Below, piece after piece: positions 1-15,052 of a stretch of DNA of 64,000 nucleotides. Position 1 is the stretch's first letter; the number at the start of each line of letters is the position of its first letter. The notes beneath the pieces were generated by a model that saw only the letters and a program-made list of their open reading frames with translations, did not search any database and was not told the DNA's origin. The translations under genes and the position numbers were made by a program. The stretch lies in assembly GCA_025201805.1 (NCBI GenBank), contig MU619383.1:3861-67860 (forward strand). The letters are read 5' to 3'. The stretch comes from Parasitella parasitica NRRL 2501 (taxonomy: Eukaryota; Fungi; Mucoromycota).

Positions 1-321
1 TATGTTTTTTAAGTTAAAATACCAGTTCATAAAGTTGTAAAGGGATAGATAAAACAAAAGAAAAAGGCCAAGGAGAGCTAACAAAGAAGCTAAAATAGTA
101 TGCATTCGGTCATCACAATATGCAATGTTTTGGGCTAAGCATGCAGAAAGAAGCCAACGGAAAAACACAGCTACAAGAGATCATCTCAAAATTTGAAAGC
201 AAACATGTACAAACAAAATATATACTTTATTCAAGTATATTGCTACTGGCGCTAGCATTATTACCACCAGCGTCCTCTTCAACATTTTGAACAACATTTT
301 GGTTTTAGAAATAAGTGATTT

Positions 322-1102
322 NNNNNNNNNNNNNNNNNNNNNNNNNNNNNNNNNNNNNNNNNNNNNNNNNNNNNNNNNNNNNNNNNNNNNNNNNNNNNNN
401 NNNNNNNNNNNNNNNNNNNNNNNNNNNNNNNNNNNNNNNNNNNNNNNNNNNNNNNNNNNNNNNNNNNNNNNNNNNNNNNNNNNNNNNNNNNNNNNNNNNN
501 NNNNNNNNNNNNNNNNNNNNNNNNNNNNNNNNNNNNNNNNNNNNNNNNNNNNNNNNNNNNNNNNNNNNNNNNNNNNNNNNNNNNNNNNNNNNNNNNNNNN
601 NNNNNNNNNNNNNNNNNNNNNNNNNNNNNNNNNNNNNNNNNNNNNNNNNNNNNNNNNNNNNNNNNNNNNNNNNNNNNNNNNNNNNNNNNNNNNNNNNNNN
701 NNNNNNNNNNNNNNNNNNNNNNNNNNNNNNNNNNNNNNNNNNNNNNNNNNNNNNNNNNNNNNNNNNNNNNNNNNNNNNNNNNNNNNNNNNNNNNNNNNNN
801 NNNNNNNNNNNNNNNNNNNNNNNNNNNNNNNNNNNNNNNNNNNNNNNNNNNNNNNNNNNNNNNNNNNNNNNNNNNNNNNNNNNNNNNNNNNNNNNNNNNN
901 NNNNNNNNNNNNNNNNNNNNNNNNNNNNNNNNNNNNNNNNNNNNNNNNNNNNNNNNNNNNNNNNNNNNNNNNNNNNNNNNNNNNNNNNNNNNNNNNNNNN
1001 NNNNNNNNNNNNNNNNNNNNNNNNNNNNNNNNNNNNNNNNNNNNNNNNNNNNNNNNNNNNNNNNNNNNNNNNNNNNNNNNNNNNNNNNNNNNNNNNNNNN
1101 NN
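322..1102. other. Assembly gap (781 N)
   Basis: Run of N. The ORF-track entries spanning it are artefacts. Confidence 1.
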
Positions 1103-1154
1103 GTCCTGGAAATGCTGTGATTTAATAAGGTTTGACACTTCTTGTCAAACATCA

Positions 1155-1340
1155 GATGTTATGTGGATAAACATTGATTGGGATATATGTTAGTATAAAT
1201 AGAGATCATATCTTGTGTCAATAAAAGTCTTCAGTTTTGTATCTGGTTTTATTCAGAAAGTCTTTATTACTTTATACAAATCTTATTTACATAACATTAC
1301 GCTGCGCCCTTTGACACTGGCACAACAAATACCTCAACAA
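1155..1340 (+). repeat. LTR-like fragment, diverged copy at ~27585-27750
   Basis: Shares blocks with 27585-27750 (GTTATGTrGATAAAyATTGAT, GTTTTGTATCTGGTTTTA). Has TATAAATAG followed ~20 nt later by AATAAA, an LTR-type promoter/polyA arrangement. Confidence 0.5.
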
Positions 1341-1579
1341 ATATTTGGTAGCAAATGTTACTACCAGCACAAAAAAAACCGAAATGTCTCAGAAATAGTA
1401 TTATGTCATTAAAAATGAGCTATCTCAACTTTTTATTTATAAACGCACATTCTGTGGCAAAATTATTTAAGTTCTCACAAGCACATAAATACTCCCATGA
1501 CCCTAATAATGTTCCCATTTGAGCACATTTATGTTTACCGAGAACATCCAGGAGGCCATAGTGCGAAATCAAACCACAA

Positions 1580-1820
1580 ATCACATTTGGAACGTATAGA
1601 GCAATGTAAGGACTGGTACATGCATGTCATCATTTACAAATGTGTCAGAAACAGAGAAACTTGGCTGACAGTTACGGCGTATGTAACTGACAGACAGACC
1701 GTTTACAACAACGAATATACAGTAAATAGAGTAGAAATGTCTAACCTTTGCACGTTATCCTATTTCAAAATAAAGAAGGAATGAAATTGTATCTATTGCT
1801 GTTTTTACTTTTTTACTACA
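1580..1820 (+). repeat. ~250-bp dispersed non-coding repeat, copy 1 of 3
   Basis: Reverse-complement matches to ~23960-24240 and ~63580-63850 (e.g. CTGACAGTTACGGC, AAATAAAGAAGGAAT..AATTGTATCTATTG). Confidence 0.85.
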
Positions 1821-3545
1821 GTGGAGTTCAAGAGAGTAGTGCGTATGAGAGTCGTCCAGAGCGCCGCGGTCAGCACGGGTCGTTCAGAGGGGTATTTTCA
1901 AGCGGCAGACGCAACCAAGGTGCTATCAAGCGTGCGGATAGCGGTGGCGTTGGCAAACGCTACCATTGCGACCAGCATGGAGCTAATGATTCTCATAACT
2001 CGAAAGACTGTTAGTTCCTGAAGTTCAAGCGGGCACGAGCAGAAGGCAAGTGTGTCAAGTGTGGAAAGCCTTACGAAAGAGGACATGCTGAGATTTGTGG
2101 GCAACGCCGTCCTCCGGGTGTAGGTCTCTCGCCGACGGTATTGAACCAAGAGGTGTTTTCCACAAGTGTAGCACCGGCGGCAGCAAAGGAGTCGTCCGAG
2201 TCCAGCAAACTGGAAGATGCTGAGAGCATGGCGGTCGATCAAGACCATTTGCTTAGTGAGTTGGCATTTCAATGTAAGTTGCCTAATGTGAAAGCGGTAA
2301 AGACTGAAACTAATTTCTTTGCGTTGTTGACCCCGTTGTTGATTTGTGTAGAATCCACCAAGTGTATCAAAGTCATTTGCAAAGTGGATACCGGGTTGCA
2401 GATTAGTTGTATCAGTTTGAGTTTTTTAATAGATGTGCTTAAAATTAAAAAAGTGAAGAAAGTGGAATGTTACCTAAAGTTTTTATCTAAGTCTATGAAG
2501 CGAGTGGCAATGACATTTCTGTTGAAATTCAAATATGCGAATGGAATTGTATTTGAGCATGCGTTAGAAGTTGTACAGTTTGAACAAGGTCTAGACTTTG
2601 AAGTTTTGTTGGGAGTAGATGTGTTGCCCAAAATGAATATCGTCGGTTTGACGGGTGTGGCGTTTCGCATTGACAGTGAGCATCAGCACTCGGATGCCAC
2701 GGAGCATGATGAGAGAAGAATGTTTGAGAATATCAATTTTGATTTTGAAGGCAAACATCTAGAAGCTGATAACTCACCTGCCGGAACTTTGGCAGAGCGT
2801 AAAGAGTTTGAGGAGTATATTTGAGAGTCTTTGAAGCGCAATAAGGCCATTCATATTGAGTCGTGTTGTCCATTGCCAGAAGCGGTTGTGAGATTACCTA
2901 CCAATGAAGGAGCGACTGCGCATCGTCATCCTTATCCTATAGCAGAAGCATTGAAGCCTGTGGTGGCAAAGTAAATTCAAAAGTGGTTGGTGTTTTAATA
3001 TACGAAATATAGATATACAATTAAAACTGGATATATTTATTTATATATAAAAAATAAGATGATTCTTCTCTACACAACATTTGCCTAGACTATTTATACT
3101 TTTCGAGTGCTGACATCGGTTGCATGCTTGTGGAATCGAGGCCTAATAAACTTGCACCAGATAGAACCAATTACTAGCCATGTGCTGCTAGTACAAGTAA
3201 TCGTAAACCAGTTATTACCAGAAGGAGACAGGAAGGATAGTGGTCTTGAGAAAGAGTATAATCGCCTTGTGGTATAAAGGATTTCTAATGAGTGTAACCA
3301 TGGTATAATACTTTTGCATAATTGTGAGAATACCCAAGTTGGATCTCAGGCACAACATCAACTCAACAACCCACCTCGCTTAGCCTTTACATCCTAAACA
3401 GTTGGATACCAAGACTATTGGGAGATCGAGAATCAACTCGTCCTTTAATAGTCCATTGTTGGTAGTACCAAAGCGTGACAAACTGGGTAACGTGGTCGAT
3501 CATTGCGTGTGTTTGGATGTGCGTTTGCTGAACAGTATCTTGCCA
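1821..3545 (+). mobile_element. Degenerate Ty3/Gypsy retrotransposon gag-pol relic
   Basis: One frame with in-frame stops carries Gag zinc knuckles (CDQHGANDSHNSKDC, CVKCGKPYERGHAEIC), an aspartic protease (VDTGLQISCIS...LLGVDVL) and the RT N-terminus (PYPIAEALKPVVAK*IQKWL). After an insertion it resumes with the RT motif SFNSPLLVVPKRD...VCLDVRLLN at ~3430-3545. Confidence 0.88.
2991..3420 (-). mobile_element. LTR-like insertion interrupting the Gypsy RT
   Basis: Non-coding block between two RT fragments. Minus strand contains TATAAATAG and ends ...TAAAACA. Right boundary approximate. Confidence 0.5.
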
Positions 3546-8183: not shown

Positions 8184-8651
8184 CTATAGTAGCGTTAATT
8201 TGACAGAGCCTTTGATTTTTGCTTTCAGTTTGATATCAGCGTCTAAATTCAAATCAAGTCTCAGCCGCAAAGCAGAATTGCCACCAGCATTAGGGTTTGA
8301 AGCAAGCTCTGGCTTTTTCATAGATGCTGCTGCTTTTTTTAATGTTTCTGCCTGTTGTTTTGCTAAATCCTGTTGCGCACTTGATGCTATGGCAGCTTTC
8401 TTCTTTTTTATCGTTTTTGTTTTATCTTTGTCATCAACTGTATCCAACTTTTTACTCTTTTTCTTGCTTTTTTTTACTGAAGAATCAGAGTTGTTGCTTT
8501 CAGCGATTACTTTTTTCTTCTTCTTTTTCTGCTTTTCTTCTTTGCCTGCTGTTTCGGTTGTCTCTGTTTTATTTACAGCTGAGCTCTTCTTTTTTGGTAA
8601 TAGTGTGGATTTTGATAAGGGAAGCGTGCCTTTATTTTTTAATGTCTCCAT
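8184..8651 (-). CDS. Cluster gene A: 155-aa Lys-rich disordered protein with C-terminal LRLDLNL motif
   Basis: Intronless ORF from the ATG at 8651 (METLKNKG). Ends ALRLRLDLNLDADIKLKAKIKGSVKLTLL*, a motif shared with three neighbours. Confidence 0.88.
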   Translation of the reverse strand: METLKNKGTLPLSKSTLLPKKKSSAVNKTETTETAGKEEKQKKKKKKVIAESNNSDSSVKKSKKKSKKLDTVDDKDKTKTIKKKKAAIASSAQQDLAKQQAETLKKAAASMKKPELASNPNAGGNSALRLRLDLNLDADIKLKAKIKGSVKLTLL

Positions 8652-9049
8652 GATCAACAATGTAAAGAACAAAGAAAAGACTTAATCGTTTGTATTGTTC
8701 AGTCAGAAGCTAAGCAGAAATAAAGAAAAGTGATGACATTTTTGTCGTCATGTCAACCTGAAACCAGGCACCTGCATTCATGCGGCGATCATCAGCCTCG
8801 CACGATTGGTCCAATTAAACTTACGAGATAATCCAAGAAGAAGCAATGATGGCATCGTTCCCAACTTGGTGCTCTGAAATTAGTATAGTAACTCATTTTT
8901 CCATGATCCTATATCATCATTACGTCTGTTTACTCTCAGTCTTTTCTTTTTTTCAATTCAAGTGATATAATTTTAAAGCGATTACACGAAAGAAAACTGG
9001 CCCTTCTTCTTTCTCTTGGAAACATTAATTATCGAAATAATAAATCAAC

Positions 9050-9604
9050 ATGTCACCTACAACTACTCCCACAAAGCCTAAAACAGAAAACAAAACAAAG
9101 ACAGATGCTGCCAAGAATAAGACTCCTGAAGAAACGAAGACACAAAATGATAAAAAAGACACTAAAACTTCACAAAACCAGGCTCCTTCTAAAGCTGTAG
9201 AATCCAGTGATGAAGATGATTCTGATGAAGACAATGACTCTGCTGATGATGCCTCTAGTGATGAAGAGACTGATTCTGACGAAGAGACTGATTCTGACGA
9301 AGAGACTGATTCTGATGAAGAGTCCGATTCTGAGGAAGATACTGCTTCTGAGGAGGAGGAATCCTCTGATGAAGAGGAATTGACACCAAAGCAACTGGCC
9401 AGACTCAAAAAGAAAAATGGTTTGGTGAAAGGTGTTACTGATACTGCTGGTCAAGTAGGCGGGGCAGTTGGTGGAGCAGTGAACAACGGCCGAAACAGTG
9501 GTAGTGATCATCCTCTTAGTCTTCGTCTTGATCTCAATTTAGATGTTGAAATCGAACTCAAAGCTCGGGTTCACGGTGATGTTACTTTGGCCCTGCTACG
9601 TTAA
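9050..9604 (+). CDS. Cluster gene B: 184-aa acidic disordered protein with C-terminal LRLDLNL motif
   Basis: Intronless ORF with SDEETD repeats. Ends PLSLRLDLNLDVEIELKARVHGDVTLALLR*. Confidence 0.92.
   Translation: MSPTTTPTKPKTENKTKTDAAKNKTPEETKTQNDKKDTKTSQNQAPSKAVESSDEDDSDEDNDSADDASSDEETDSDEETDSDEETDSDEESDSEEDTASEEEESSDEEELTPKQLARLKKKNGLVKGVTDTAGQVGGAVGGAVNNGRNSGSDHPLSLRLDLNLDVEIELKARVHGDVTLALLR
9257..9379 (+). repeat. 18-bp coding tandem repeat (SDEETD x6-7)
   Basis: TCTGAyGAAGAGACTGAT units in frame in gene B, degenerating towards the 3' end. Confidence 0.9.
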
Positions 9605-9841
9605 TCTGTTACTTGTTTGTCAATCTCTATATATTTATAAAACATCTACATTTTATTATTATTTACTATTTTTTCCTTAAATAAATTGAATTTTATAACT
9701 CTACACATCAGATTCTTTTTAGAAATTAGGGGTAAATTTTTTAGATCTAAGATAATTCATAAAAATGAAACAGGACAAATCATTCAGATTATTACAATTC
9801 AAAGATATTTATTATATAATATTAAAGATAACTGACGGCAT

Positions 9842-10250
9842 TTATGCCAAAAGGGCAAGAGTAACATCACCTACACAAAAAGAGTTTTAGAAAATAACTA
9901 ACAATACGCATAAAATATTTCTTACCATGGACTCTTGCCTTGAGAGTAATTTCAACTTCCAAGTTGAGATCAAGACGCAGACTCAGGGGCTGTTGTCCAC
10001 CACCACTACCTTGTTGGCCTTGTTGCCCACCGCCACCAATAGCGCCTTCGCCCAGGCCTGATAATGTATCTAACGGATCATTCTTGATTAAACCAAGACC
10101 TTTGGATTTGGATGATTTTTTCTTCTTGGGCTTCCTTGTCTTTTCCTTCTTTTGCGATGATTTTTTTGATTTCACAGGAGCCTCATCCTCAGACCCGTTA
10201 GTTTCTTTGATCTTTCCCTCTTGCTTGTCCACTTCTTTAACTGAGGCCAT
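9842..10250 (-). CDS. Cluster gene C: 117-aa Lys/Gly/Gln-rich protein with C-terminal LRLDLNL motif (2 exons: 10250-9926, 9870-9842)
   Basis: Removing a 55-nt GTAAG...TAG intron (9925-9871) gives ...PLSLRLDLNLEVEITLKARVHGDVTLALLA*, nearly identical to gene B's tail. Confidence 0.9.
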
Positions 10251-10551
10251 TTTATTTTTTGATATATCGTTTTATTGGTAAAAAGAAGAAAAGAATACAT
10301 ATTAATTTTTATTTAGTGGGTTTATAAGATTCTTTATGATTGACATGACAACAGAATGACCAAATTAAATGACTCCATTCGATATTTTTACCCGTGAATT
10401 AAGGTCAATTTGGACACTAACTCTTTTTATAAAAAGTTTCCATATTACATCACCAAGTGATATGTAACTGTAACCTTTGTATTTATTACGAATTTTCTTT
10501 TCGTTTTTTCTATTTTCTTTTTTCTTTATATTAATTGCCTACATTTATAAC

Positions 10552-10821
10552 ATGTCTGAACAAGAGCAACAGCAGCAAAACCAAGTAGCCATCAAAGATA
10601 AAAAACGTAAGAAATCTTTACCGAAAAACAAGACCCGTCAAGAATCCATGCTGCAGCAAAGAAAAGCATTGGCAGCACAGCAACAGCAGCAACAGCAAGC
10701 AGCACAAAGCAGCGGTAGAAATAGCAGCATGCCCAAGGTGCGTCTTGATCTCAACCTGGAGGCAGAGCTCTATTTGAAAGCAAAAGCCAAAGGCGATGTC
10801 ACCTTGACATTGCTCTCCTAA
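10552..10821 (+). CDS. Cluster gene D: 89-aa Gln/Lys-rich protein with C-terminal LRLDLNL-type motif
   Basis: ATG at 10552 (MSEQEQQQQ). Ends PKVRLDLNLEAELYLKAKAKGDVTLTLLS*. Confidence 0.88.
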   Translation: MSEQEQQQQNQVAIKDKKRKKSLPKNKTRQESMLQQRKALAAQQQQQQQAAQSSGRNSSMPKVRLDLNLEAELYLKAKAKGDVTLTLLS

Positions 10822-11057: not shown

Positions 11058-11771
11058 TTAGTTTCGAGGAATATGGATACTGAAGGTGATTCCGGTCTTC
11101 GTTGCTTCAACTTTGACGACTATATCATCCTTGTCTCCGCTTCCAATACTGATTTTTCCCGCATCATCGCCATTATGAGCAGTAGAATCTTCATTTTTAC
11201 AACCAGTGGAGGGCTTCTCTTCTTGGCCTTGCTCGTCATCTTCTAATGGAGTAGAGTCAAAGTTACCGTAACTATGCAGCATGTCACCAAGAGGAAGCTC
11301 GAAAGAATGGTGGGTTCCCTTATCATCATCCTTCCTGTCATATTTAGTCTTGACATCATTGTACGTATCTTGGACAGTGTCTCGGATAGTTTGTTTACTG
11401 ACTTGCTCTCCTTGCTCCTTGGCCTCATCTTCTAACATAGACAATCTTTTCATCAGCATGCGATTATATTCTGAAATAGCATTCATCAAAGTCATAGCAT
11501 CTGTATTGCCTGCAAATAGGCCCGTATCATCATCGCTGTCATCATCCAATTCAGTTTGAGCTTCTTGCGCAATGTCTTTTACAGAGTTGGAAACGTCTGG
11601 CTGGACGGCGTCATTGTTTTTTTCCTCAGCAGCATCATCCTTAGAGATCTTGGTCTTCTTTGATTTTGCGGCAGGTATAACAGACTCTCCTAAACCTCGA
11701 GGGTGTGCCTTTTTCGATTTTTTGTTGGCAGATGAGGATTTTTTATTCTTTTTTTCAACGGTGGAAGGCAT
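11058..11771 (-). CDS. Cluster gene E: 237-aa charged protein with short central helix and C-terminal beta-rich motif
   Basis: Intronless ORF with a basic N-terminus and acidic body. Ends DDIVVKVEATKTGITFSIHIPRN*. Confidence 0.85.
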   Translation of the reverse strand: MPSTVEKKNKKSSSANKKSKKAHPRGLGESVIPAAKSKKTKISKDDAAEEKNNDAVQPDVSNSVKDIAQEAQTELDDDSDDDTGLFAGNTDAMTLMNAISEYNRMLMKRLSMLEDEAKEQGEQVSKQTIRDTVQDTYNDVKTKYDRKDDDKGTHHSFELPLGDMLHSYGNFDSTPLEDDEQGQEEKPSTGCKNEDSTAHNGDDAGKISIGSGDKDDIVVKVEATKTGITFSIHIPRN

Positions 11772-12060: not shown

Positions 12061-15052
12061 ATGAAAAACCAGCAAGCGAAACAACAAGAAGCAGCAGCAG
12101 CTGCTGCCCGAGCAGCTGAGGATCAAAAGCAAACTACTCAAGAGCAATCTAACCAAGGCCAAGAAGCACAAAAAGCTCAAAAGTCTCAAAATAACAATCA
12201 AGAACAAACACAGGGTCAACAAGAACAAGGTGATGATCAAACTGATAATAGCAAAGATCAAGATTCTGAGCAAGAACAACAAGAGCAAGCTGTCTCTGAT
12301 GAAGAAGAATCTGATGAAGAAGACGAGTCCGATGAAGATGAAGAAGAAGGTGATGATGATGACCTCGAAGAATTGTATCGCCTCATGGTCGGAAAGAGAG
12401 TCAATAAAAGTGGTCTAGTCGTCGACAAGAAATCAGGCACTGTTCTAGGCAAAATTGTTGAAGGCAAGGTTAAAAGAATGTCAGGCAAGAAGGTCCGTGA
12501 CAATGGTGAAGTCTACAATGACAAGGGAAAGCTCATTGGCCGTGTAGAGCCAATTCAAGAAGACAGCGATGATAGCGATGAAAGTGATGGCTCGGACAAC
12601 GATCAAGAAGAAGTTTTTGCTAACGAAGAGCAAGAAGGTACTGTATTGCAGAGCTGTTTCCCTAATTTAGTAATCTTGCCTAATTCATTCCCAATCTGTA
12701 GATGTCGCTGACACCATCAAGGATAATAAGGTTGCCCCTGAAAATGATGTCAAAGCTGCAGATGACGAAAATGACAGTAACTCCAATGATAAGGCTGAAA
12801 CTGCACAGGATACTGTTAAAGACTTGGAGAGCGGCGCTGAAGACAAAGCTAATGATATGCAAGATCCCAATGTTACGGAAAGTGATATTGAAGACGAGGT
12901 GAATGATGCCAATGACGTTAGCAAAAACATAGCAAGCGATGCCAAAGATACTTCTGATGATACACAAGAACGAGGAAGCAACCAATATGATGAAAGCAGT
13001 GTTGAAGATATTCAAAGTGGAGATAATAAAGATGATGGAGAAGAAGATAATGATGAAGAAGTAGAAGAAGAAAAACCTTTCAATCCTTATGACCTAGTTG
13101 ATGAAAACTCTCCTGAGGTTCGTAAATCTGGCAAGGTCGTTGACATGGAAGACAATGTCATTGGCACTGTTAATAAGAGCATGGCACCTAAGTTAGATGG
13201 CTTCAAGGTCGACAAAGACGGCAATGTTATCAACCATGAAGGCCATATTGTCGCCAAGGCTGACCTATACCAACCTCCTGCTGAACAAGAAGAGGAAAAG
13301 CCGTTCAATCCCAACGAAAATGTTAATGAAGACTCGCCGGAAGTTCGTAAGTCTGGCAAGATTGTAGACATGGAAGATAACATCGTTGGTGCTATTGATA
13401 AAGAGCAAGCTCCTAAATTTGTTGGTTTCAAAGTTGATCCTCAAGGAAATGTTATCGATAATGAAGGCCATATTGTTTCCAAAGCTGATCTCTACACAAT
13501 TGAAGAAGAAGAGGATAAAGAAGAAAAGCCCTTTAACCCCAACGAAATGGTCAACGCTGATTCTCCCGAGGTTCGCAAGTCTGGAAAGGTTCTTGACATG
13601 GATGATAATCTCGTCGGGTATGTTGACAAGCGCGTCGCTGCTAAACTTGCAGGCATGAAGGTCGACGAAGACGGTAATGTGGTCAATAGCGATGGCCATA
13701 TTGTTGGAAAAGCTGATATGATCAAACCTGAAGCTGAGGAAGAAGAGCCCAAGGAAGAAGAAAAGAAGCCTTTTAATCCCAATGAAAATGTTAATGAGGA
13801 CTCTCCCGAAGTGAAAAAGTCTGGCAAGATCCTTGACATGGATGATGAAGTTGTTGGCCATATTGACAAAAAACTTGCTGCTAAATTTATTGGCTTCAAG
13901 GTGGATCCTCAGGGCAATGTTATTGATAACGATGGCCATATCGTTGCTACTGCCGAAATGATTCAAGTGGAAGAGGAGCAGAAGCCATTCAATCCAAATG
14001 AGGCCGTTGATGAAAATTCTCCCGAGGTCAAGCGATCTGGCAAGGTAGTTGACATGGATGATAACATTGTTGGCTCTGTTGACAAGCATCTTGCCCCCAA
14101 GCTGGCTGGCTTCAAGGTTGATGACAATGGCAATGTTATTGACAATGAGGGCCACATTGTTGCCAGAGCTGAAATGATTCCTCACGAAGAAGAACTAGAC
14201 CCCAACAAGCCATTCAATCCTAATACCATGGTCGATGAACATTCTCCTCGTGTGAGAAAGTCTGGCAAGGTGGTTGACGAAGATGACAATATCGTCGGTG
14301 AAGTTGATAAAAGTTCTGCACACAAATTGGCTGGCTTCCCGGTGGATGACGATGGTAACATCATTGACAATGAAGGTCATACAGTTGGTAAAGCCAAGAT
14401 GTACGACAAGAAGACTGAAGAGCAGCTCAAAGAAGAAGCTGAAGAAGAAGAATACCGCAAAATTGCTGATCAAATGTCGCAATCCATTCAAATCTCCTTG
14501 GACAAGATCAAACCTGTTTTGAAGAACATTACCGACTTGATCGACGAAGAAGAAGCCAAGCCTCAAGAGGAACGTGATGAACAAAAGTTGGTTGATACAG
14601 TCAAGCCATTGATTGAGCAAGGTTCTGCTATTCTGGAGGAATGTAATGGTGCCATTCGTGGTCTTGATCCCTCTGGAAGGATTGCTAAACAGGCTCAGGC
14701 CAAGACCTCAGCAAGAAAGGCTTCTCCTGAAGAATATCATTTGGCTGACCTTTTGGCTCAGCTGTCTGGCGATGTTAGCACCGCTATTGACAGGGCAAAG
14801 AAGAAGATACGAAGCATGCCTCATGCCAAGAAGGAATTGAGTCCCTTGTGGAATATCTTGCAAAGCCCTCTGCTTCAAATCCTCTCAGCTGTTGGTCTTT
14901 TGTTGACTGGTGTATTGGGTCTTGTTGGCAATATCTTGAACGGCCTCGGTCTTGGTTCCATCATCAATAGCTTGTTGGGCGGTATTGGCCTCAACAAGAT
15001 TCTCGAAGGTTTCGGCTTAGGTGATGCTCTAAAGTTGGGCAGAAAGAAATAA
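12061..15052 (+). CDS. Cluster gene F: 975-aa repeat protein, DUF3659-like repeats plus DUF6987-like helical C-terminus (2 exons: 12061-12637, 12702-15052)
   Basis: A 64-nt GT...TAG intron with a CTAAT branch point joins two ORF-track ORFs in frame. One divergent and six tandem G-x-V-x-D-x-x-G repeats, then a helical domain (DEQKLVDTVKPLIEQG...IRGLDPSGRIA...PEEYHLADLL...MPHAKKELSPLW) and a Gly/Leu hydrophobic tail. Family names are from recall. Confidence 0.9.
13075..14400 (+). repeat. Six tandem ~72-80-aa coding repeats in gene F
   Basis: KPFNP...SPEVRKSGKVVDMxDNxVGxVDK..AxKLxGFKVD..GNVIDNEGHIVxKA units start near 13075, 13298, 13526, 13766, 13982 and 14207. Confidence 0.95.

Follow-up and report, generated by a model that had tools for sequence, protein, structure and literature searches.

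A conserved C-terminal beta-strand tail on four disordered proteins of Parasitella parasitica and its recurrent linkage to a DUF3659-DUF6987 gene

Among the systems closest to the protein tail considered here are the NLR-associated amyloid motifs of fungi (HET-s/HRAM, PP and sigma). Like the tail, these are conserved beta-forming motifs of about 21-28 residues at the extreme C-terminus, with conserved Asn, Gly and charged residues, and they belong to small conserved gene clusters with functional partners. They are carried both by a HeLo-type effector and by the N-terminus of the adjacent NLR (PMC5485727). A different likeness, drawn in a preliminary description of this DNA, is with alternating, charge-complementary peptides. 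The ionic self-complementary peptides EAK16 and RADA16 are of this type: in them, too, apolar residues strictly alternate with charged ones, and like charges come in blocks. Amphipathic beta-strands are also an accepted lipid-associating motif of apolipoprotein B, where they bind lipoprotein cores, and the tail resembles them in its apolar/polar alternation and in a possible neutral-lipid interface. Hydrophilins and LEA-like proteins, for their part, recall the proteins that bear the tail in being small, very hydrophilic, low in complexity and probably disordered. The DUF3659/DUF6987 family shares with the tail family its occurrence in Mucoromycota, Ascomycota and Basidiomycota, and each of the two shows high conservation while being all but uncharacterised.

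The window analysed here is a stretch of 64,000 nucleotides from P. parasitica NRRL 2501 (contig MU619383.1). Four genes with a common tail had been recognised in it in the preliminary description, and a six-frame scan of the window confirmed exactly four copies, in genes A-D between 8184 and 10821; a six-frame search of the whole 32.8-Mb genome returned only these four. The genes and their neighbours, in window positions, are as follows.

8187-8651, reverse strand: gene A, 155 aa from the first ATG; stop codon at 8184-8186
8187-8270, reverse strand: tail of gene A, a basic variant with Ser at position 22
8652-9049, no strand: common upstream region of the head-to-head pair A/B
9050-9601, forward strand: gene B, 184 aa; stop codon at 9602-9604
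9515-9598, forward strand: tail of gene B, followed by one Arg codon
9845-10250, reverse strand: gene C; stop codon at 9842-9844
9926-10250, reverse strand: exon 1 of gene C
9926-9986, reverse strand: exon 1 part of the gene C tail, which begins at 9986 and continues past the intron
9871-9925, reverse strand: intron of gene C, 55 nt, GTAAG...TAG
9845-9870, reverse strand: exon 2 of gene C, coding for the last tail residues
10251-10551, no strand: common upstream region of the head-to-head pair C/D
10552-10818, forward strand: gene D, 89 aa; stop codon at 10819-10821
10732-10815, forward strand: tail of gene D, followed by one Ser codon
11061-11771, reverse strand: gene E, 237 aa, acidic, hydrophilic, single copy
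12061-15049, forward strand: DUF3659-DUF6987 gene, 975 aa, with seven DUF3659 repeats and a C-terminal DUF6987
12061-12636 and 12701-15049, forward strand: exons of the DUF3659-DUF6987 gene (intron 12637-12700)

The open reading frames of A and D open upstream at non-ATG codons, and the true starts are likely to be the ATGs at 8651 and 10552, respectively. The 55-nt intron cuts the gene C tail just past a His codon and is backed by the spliced annotation of the orthologue in another Parasitella assembly (P0005); gene C was accordingly searched and aligned per exon. Both head-to-head pairs, together with the charges of the arms that precede the tails, are maintained in three Mucorales genera, including Gilbertella and Rhizopus, in each of which gene A has an orthologue (L005 and L014). 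A search of three head-to-head intergenic regions for common promoter elements yielded only A/G-rich low-complexity k-mers and no STRE. Gene E, whose membership of the cluster is conserved in Mucoromycota, has a conserved C-terminal alternating segment of its own; this was considered as a divergent copy of the 28-residue motif and rejected, being unrelated to the motif profile.

The conserved unit of the tail comprises 28 residues, somewhat longer than the strand of about 25 first proposed, and the strict alternation claimed for that strand is borne out. All odd positions are Leu, Val, Ile, Ala or Gly, giving a wholly aliphatic face to which Leu contributes nine or ten residues, and the periodicity of two far exceeds chance: the hydrophobic moment is maximal at 180 degrees, where it reaches 2.7-3.1 while the highest values among 2000 shuffles were 2.0-2.3; at 100 degrees it amounts to only about 0.2. 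The polar face is basic at positions 2 and 4, acidic or amide at 6, 8, 10 and 12, variable at 14 and basic again at 16, 18 and 20, ending with Asp22 and Thr24. It is not simply an acidic half followed by a basic half, as earlier pictured. Among 140 unique tails from three phyla, Arg4, Asp6, Asn8, Ala17, Gly21 and Asp22 occur at 99-100% and Thr24 at 91%, with the qualification that the extraction pattern itself partly fixed positions 4-9 and 21-22. Both faces are near-invariant, the polar as well conserved as the apolar, which argues for a specific protein interface and would be unneeded in a generic alternating self-assembling peptide. Orthologous tails compared over 20 codons differ synonymously at 8-15 and non-synonymously at 0-3, indicating strong selection at the protein level. 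About two thirds of matches terminate 0-2 residues past the tail, and most apparent extensions beyond it look like intron or UTR read-through.

The four arms are different and disordered, as had been described. In orthologue and cross-phylum comparisons their identity is 18-57%, versus 79-100% for the tail, and they are hydrophilic (GRAVY -1.2 to -1.75), low in complexity and fast-evolving. The arm of A is basic and Lys-rich (net +20), that of B strongly acidic and rich in Ser, Asp and Glu (net -28), that of C basic, Lys-rich and Gly/Gln-rich, and that of D basic and Gln-rich; signal peptides were sought in A-D and none was found. For the four proteins, tails included, GRAVY values are -0.96 to -1.38. 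Despite this strong hydrophilicity, assignment to the hydrophilins was rejected, glycine exceeding the 6% required of that group in C alone (14.8% in exon 1, compared with 3.2% in A, 5.4% in B and 2.2% in D). The LEA families differ in turn in that A-D are defined by a beta tail and have no LEA match in Pfam, although in some arms Gly/Ala/Thr/Val/Gln-rich repeats directly precede the tail, as a further likeness to such proteins.

The tail defines a large, unnamed family that has no Pfam model, solved structure or located paper. A profile search of 1.8 billion proteins, with best matches of E=4.5e-22, drew 1049 representatives of clusters (E<=1e-3) out of Mucoromycota, Ascomycota and Basidiomycota. 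When A-D, E and ten long homologues were scanned against Pfam, no family emerged for the tail proteins, the matches of A-D at E<=1 being weak, sub-threshold and to unrelated families. Precomputed Pfam domains were likewise absent from tail homologues, save for one tail protein joined to a DUF676-NACHT protein (P0138), which looks like a fused gene model. A profile search of PDB sequences with the tail returned nothing at E<=10; in the ESM Atlas the whole protein matched only fungal clusters without a name and the tail by itself matched nothing, and a full-text literature search for motif strings found no paper. A-D also have no match at E<=1 to HeLo, HELL, SesA, PNP_UDP or the HET-s prion-domain model in Pfam, and no NACHT or NB-ARC neighbour was seen across the 13 fungal loci inspected. 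Unlike the NLR amyloid motifs, the tail sits on proteins without a folded domain, none of its four genomic copies is on an NLR, and its recurrent neighbour is a DUF3659/DUF6987 gene. Membership of the NLR amyloid-signalling systems was therefore rejected, since all four copies are C-terminal on small proteins with no NLR or effector domain.

The recurrent linkage of tail genes to a DUF3659/DUF6987 gene is a new observation, overlooked in the preliminary description. The four tail genes and every DUF3659 and DUF6987 match of the 32.8-Mb genome lie within about 7 kb, the matches belonging to the single DUF3659-DUF6987 gene detected (DUF6987 at 2.4e-86, DUF3659 at 2.7e-74). Ten of the 13 loci, representing three phyla (Mucorales, Umbelopsis, Penicillium, Aspergillus, Metarhizium, Coniochaeta, Orbilia and Armillaria), have such a gene no more than 10 kb from a tail gene; the Agaricomycete loci of Mycena, Plicaturopsis and Hohenbuehelia have none within that distance. 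At least two linked tail paralogues are likewise present in 10 of 13 loci. In Dikarya loci a small beta-trefoil protein (PF28325) is encoded nearby, and a search with one Armillaria query found no counterpart in the present genome. The tail proteins are neighbours of the DUF3659/DUF6987 family, not members: there is no sequence similarity, and A-D give no match to PF12396 or PF22485 above gathering score. In Aspergillus oryzae, the DUF3659 protein LdrD, whose C-terminal region is conserved, is found on lipid droplets and belongs to a set of proteins without which droplet biogenesis became aberrant; its paralogues are reported not to be on droplets (bioRxiv 10.1101/2022.11.24.517872). This connection to lipid droplets runs through membership of the DUF3659 family, which LdrD and the window gene share, and gene linkage can also mirror co-regulation without physical contact. 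An AlphaFold2 model of DUF6987 shows a bundle of four helices and, after it, a hydrophobic tail rich in Gly and Leu; Foldseek against the PDB gave only weak, generic helical-bundle matches, headed by the lipid-binding Afmp4p of Aspergillus fumigatus (E=0.04).

For the lone tail, AlphaFold2 predicts an extended chain of moderate confidence (pLDDT 74-81, on a shallow, nearly invariant alignment) with no intramolecular pairing, which fits an element that requires an intermolecular partner. We favour, tentatively and as somewhat short of probable, the reading that the tail serves docking or assembly by pairing as a beta-strand between molecules and so tethers charged disordered arms, likely together with the DUF3659-DUF6987 product at lipid droplets. 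By itself the tail would be an extended strand, gaining structure once it pairs with further tails of its family, with a conserved partner or with both. Paired tails would then tether interchangeable charged arms, polycationic in A, C and D and polyanionic in B, to one supramolecular assembly, which would most likely include the neighbouring DUF3659-DUF6987 product of the LdrD family and which gene E (in Mucoromycota) or the small beta-trefoil protein (in Dikarya) may join. Because the neighbouring gene belongs to a family with a lipid-droplet-associated member, LdrD, the probable site is the lipid-droplet surface or the ER next to it, and the arms would there make up a brush that is hydrophilic and charged. 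Since linked paralogues are usual, hetero-assembly is possible. It speaks against this reading that arms rich in Lys/Arg, or acidic and rich in Ser, are also reminiscent of nuclear or nucleolar proteins.

The tail might instead be a homo- or hetero-polymerisation module, as the preliminary description inferred, free-standing and forming an antiparallel beta-sheet fibre, gel or oligomer with no other partner. Its paralogues would co-assemble and present a mixture of charged arms, which in spores, for instance, could serve as a protective matrix or condensate scaffold. The perfect two-residue periodicity, the extended and partnerless monomer model, the presence of linked paralogues in most genomes and the opposite charges kept by the A and B arms all agree with such a module, as do the invariant Asn and conserved charges, which are of the type that stabilises ordered cross-beta structures such as HET-s (PMC5485727). 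In antiparallel registers of near-full overlap, B:B pairs and pairs of the Dikarya consensus make six opposite-charge contacts and no like-charge contact, and A:A and A:B pairs retain one or two like-charge contacts. Shuffled polar faces, however, equal or better this complementarity in 35-57% of trials (P 0.35-0.57), and the argument from complementary charge blocks made in the preliminary description was rejected as evidence on that ground. The order of charges is no more self-complementary than random orderings, and the tail differs from EAK16 and RADA16 also in being natural, in its Gly-Asp turn and in specific polar residues that hardly vary. Parallel stacking in register, as is usual in amyloids, is electrostatically poor, placing 8-10 like charges together per pair of tails. 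A defined interface in place of a generic sheet is suggested by Ala17, small and invariant, and by the conservation of the polar face, and the conserved linkage to DUF3659/DUF6987, which a free-standing polymer leaves unexplained, indicates a defined partner system. Polymerisation on its own is plausible but rather unlikely, and the interpretation first offered for the locus is partly supported.

Direct contact with lipid would dispense with a protein partner, the tail lying flat as an amphipathic beta-strand on a membrane or on the surface where neutral lipid and phospholipid meet in lipid droplets, and anchoring the arms there. Its all-aliphatic face and extreme beta amphipathicity would suit this role, as would a genomic neighbour whose family includes a lipid-droplet member, and apolipoprotein B provides a precedent; the tail, at 28 residues with one apolar face, falls within the alternating strands of at least about 11 residues that are of the apolipoprotein B type. 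The strands of apolipoprotein B, however, are many, degenerate and luminal and have no sequence relation to the tail, which is single, highly conserved and cytosolic on a disordered protein. We know of no cytosolic lipid-droplet protein that uses such a strand, and near-invariant polar residues and a small Ala on the apolar face are unexpected at a fluid interface, making purely lipid-borne anchoring quite unlikely. A role as a sorting, turnover or pore-type signal is very improbable, be it as a degron at the C-terminus, for import into an organelle or as a hairpin that inserts into membranes. It would account for the strictly C-terminal position, and the transmembrane hairpins of pore-forming proteins are built of alternating stretches (about 2 x 10-12 residues), but the tail proteins have neither a signal peptide nor a folded soluble domain, and the only turn-like element, Gly21-Asp22, lies so near the end that about 19 residues fall on one side of it and about 6 on the other, which does not suit a symmetric hairpin in a membrane. 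Furthermore, the end of the tail is not a PTS1-type tripeptide, a manual comparison placed it out of register with the mitochondrial beta-signal, and strict conservation across 28 residues is unusual for a degron.

A wider version of the docking reading, doubtful at present, is that the tail proteins, together with the DUF3659-DUF6987 protein and with a third, small component (E in Mucoromycota, the beta-trefoil protein in Dikarya), constitute an ancient, undescribed fungal surface coat, probably of lipid droplets. In such a coat the tail would make an ordered sheet or dock by strand addition, and the brush of polycationic and polyanionic arms would control droplet stability, contacts or dormancy, a mode of droplet attachment unlike amphipathic helices and hydrophobic hairpins. 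A 28-residue tail kept near-unchanged across three phyla on fast-evolving disordered proteins represents a strong, specific and unexplained constraint, and the linkage to DUF3659/DUF6987, a family of which the one member studied so far is lipid-droplet-associated, supplies a concrete partner and place to test. Docking by the tail, if correct, would provide a beta-strand-based principle of attachment or assembly for fungal lipid-droplet or stress biology, including that of oleaginous and pathogenic Mucorales, and a small tag of natural origin with which disordered chains could be tethered.

Four small neighboring genes (A–D, window 8184–10821) encode proteins that all end in the same 28-residue segment, here called the tail; the shared C-terminal motif of the preliminary description is confirmed. 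When the complete assembly (32.8 Mb) was searched in six frames, only these four copies were found. The window is of fungal origin, its introns are short and of the GT...AG type, and GC content is ~35–40%; gene C was analyzed as separate exons throughout. The genes considered are as follows.

8187–8651, minus strand: gene A, ending in the 28-residue tail
9050–9601, plus strand: gene B, ending in the 28-residue tail
9926–10250 (exon 1) and 9845–9870 (exon 2), minus strand: gene C, with a 55-nt intron (9871–9925), ending in the 28-residue tail
10552–10818, plus strand: gene D, ending in the 28-residue tail
11061–11771, minus strand: gene E, a conserved cluster member in Mucoromycota (fetched loci L005, Gilbertella, 8414–9274; L014, Rhizopus, 8714–9355; L010, 7957–9231)
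12061–12636 and 12701–15049, plus strand: DUF3659/DUF6987 gene, 975 aa, with seven DUF3659 repeats and a C-terminal DUF6987

The main new result is the linkage of the tail genes to the DUF3659/DUF6987 gene. Downstream of A–D lie gene E and then this gene, in which ORFs 12061–12711 and 12824–15052 are joined across a 64-nt intron (12637–12700). All DUF6987 and DUF3659 matches from whole-genome searches lie in this single gene and, as there are only four tail copies, all of these elements therefore fall within ~7 kb; the chance of two unique loci lying ≤10 kb apart in 32.8 Mb is estimated to be of the order of 6e-4. Fungal genomes were sampled locus by locus, and 13 loci (the window and 12 fetched) were inspected using recorded Pfam hits and six-frame phmmer/hmmsearch scans. 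A DUF3659/DUF6987 gene was located ≤10 kb from a tail gene in 10 of them (the window, Gilbertella, Rhizopus, Umbelopsis, Penicillium, Aspergillus, Metarhizium, Coniochaeta, Orbilia, and Armillaria), and none was seen within that distance in the Mycena, Plicaturopsis, and Hohenbuehelia loci. Linked tail paralogs, in at least two copies, were likewise present in 10/13 loci. A/B and C/D are arranged head to head in all three Mucorales genera, with the order of the pairs differing, suggesting that each pair has a bidirectional promoter and is matched in expression; no promoter motif shared between the head-to-head pairs was found.

In four Dikarya loci the group also includes a small gene annotated Beta_trefoil_fun (PF28325), which lies either between the tail gene and the DUF3659/DUF6987 gene or next to them (L006 8627–9334; L009 8610–9327; L011 8559–9402; L015 6597–7206), with a hydrophobic N-terminus that was read in two of the proteins (L006, L009). 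One Armillaria query with this protein gave no match in the present genome, and in Mucoromycota its place is occupied by gene E. The product of gene E is acidic, hydrophilic, and single-copy, and its C-terminal ~30 residues, which contain a short alternating segment resembling a beta-hairpin, hardly differ in Gilbertella; this end was rejected as a tail relative, being unrelated to the tail profile.

Relatives of the tail proteins, every one annotated as hypothetical, were recovered by word-based search from Mucoromycota, Basidiomycota, and Ascomycota, and named members include Glomeromycotina, Orbiliomycetes, Sordariomycetes, and Agaricales. A tail-region profile scored against 1.84 billion representatives reached E<=1e-3 with 1049 proteins and E<=1e-10 with 501; the majority are short proteins in which the tail comes last. 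Searches of Pfam, PDB, and the Atlas found no homology to characterized families (no Pfam model, PDB sequence relative, or named Atlas cluster), and the motif strings searched turned up in no paper. The family and its conserved gene neighborhood appear undescribed and merit experimental follow-up.

The consensus of 140 unique tails from database homologs is L-[KR]-L-R-L-D-L-N-L-[DE]-[VI]-[ED]-[IV]-x-[LI]-K-A-[KR]-[IV]-H-G-D-[VL]-T-L-x-L-L. All odd positions are aliphatic or small, and conservation is strong at the even positions too; Arg4, Asp6, Asn8, Ala17, Gly21, and Asp22 stand at 99–100% and Thr24 at 91% (positions 4–9 and 21–22 being partly constrained by the extraction pattern). The proposed alternation of an amphipathic beta-strand was upheld: the hydrophobic moment is greatest at exactly 180 degrees (2.7–3.1 vs a shuffled maximum of 2.0–2.3) and is ~0.2 at the helical angle. 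Across the first 20 tail codons, Parasitella, Gilbertella, and Rhizopus orthologs show 8–15 synonymous and only 0–3 non-synonymous differences; conservation acts on the protein, and this pattern rules out an element acting at the DNA or RNA level as well as recent gene conversion. In about two thirds of matches the protein ends 0–2 residues past the tail, and most apparent extensions resemble non-coding sequence. Many Pezizomycotina entries (e.g., P0039, P0045, P0060, P0077; also L007 10592) run on into 'Y-V...' and junk-like sequence from a 5' splice-site-like sequence within the last Leu codon, which fits read-through of an intron starting inside that codon (TT/GTACGT), so that the recorded C-termini of these entries would be wrong.

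The remainder of each protein, the arm, is very hydrophilic (GRAVY -1.2 to -1.75) and 74–85% disorder-promoting, and carries neither a Pfam domain nor a signal peptide. The arms are fast-evolving, and their identity is 36–57% between Mucorales genera and 18–19% across phyla, vs 79–100% for the tail, yet charge class is kept in the three Mucorales genera (A ~+20, B ~-30, C and D mildly basic), in agreement with the four differing disordered arms described previously. The criteria for hydrophilins are partly matched by A–D. Conceptually, the tails come nearest to the amyloid signaling motifs associated with fungal NLRs, which are likewise short beta motifs at the C-terminus of proteins from gene clusters. 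Those motifs are defined by their recurrence on an adjacent NLR and by an effector domain on the protein that bears them (PMC5485727); a genome search and Pfam scan found neither for the tail genes. One 1550-aa Triangularia verruculosa entry (P0138) combines a tail protein with a DUF676-NACHT NLR-like protein; it is probably a fused model of neighboring genes, but given this analogy is worth a look.

DUF6987 is unusually conserved across fungal phyla, with 57–65% identity between Mucorales and most Ascomycota matches (e.g., Xylariales). Its AlphaFold2 model (pTM 0.75) comprises a bundle of four long helices and, after it, a hydrophobic segment rich in Gly and Leu that is modeled with low confidence, and Foldseek returned only weak helical-bundle matches, the best of which, an Aspergillus fumigatus fatty-acid-binding protein (E=0.04), was not relied on. 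The only functional report found on this family concerns Aspergillus oryzae LdrD, a DUF3659 protein compared here at family level rather than as an established ortholog, which localizes to lipid droplets, has a conserved C-terminal region with predicted amphipathic helices, and is among the proteins whose loss leads to aberrant droplet biogenesis; its paralogs are not on droplets (preprint 10.1101/2022.11.24.517872).

AlphaFold2 (45-residue tail region, 26-row alignment) returned an extended chain without secondary-structure pairing (pLDDT 74–81 over the motif), and as modeled the tail therefore behaves as a strand needing a partner in trans. Both faces are conserved, with an invariant small Ala on the apolar one and Asn and Gly-Asp likewise invariant, and this speaks for a specific protein interface. 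Our best, though tentative, reading is that the tail pairs in trans as an intermolecular beta-strand, docking or assembling, and would thereby link the disordered arms, with their different charges, to the neighboring DUF3659-DUF6987 system in one assembly, probably located at lipid droplets or the ER. Polymerization of the tail with no other partner, as first suggested, seems unlikely, since a generic sheet would not impose conservation of both faces. For B:B and the Dikarya consensus, antiparallel pairing with near-full overlap does give six opposite-charge and zero like-charge contacts, with one or two like-charge contacts remaining in A:A and A:B, and parallel in-register stacking of homotypic pairs gives 8–10 like-charge contacts; however, shuffled polar faces pair as well or better in 35–57% of trials, and the charge blocks are thus no evidence for self-complementarity. 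The interpretation in the preliminary description is supported in part, in its periodicity and disordered arms but not in its charge-block argument. That the tail binds a lipid interface directly, in the manner of apoB, is slightly less likely still, as a fluid lipid surface would not impose such two-faced conservation either, and a sorting, degron, or pore signal is highly improbable.

The neighboring gene is 100% identical to the 975-aa Parasitella parasitica protein P0214. Proteins P0005 and P0215, from a second assembly under that name, share only 67–84% identity with the window genes (9924–10250, 12118–15049), and judged by these proteins the two assemblies are quite divergent. Window positions 1–2000 are very AT-rich (22% GC), with long ORFs at 181–1193 that occupy several frames of both strands; this stretch is probably low-complexity or repeat sequence.
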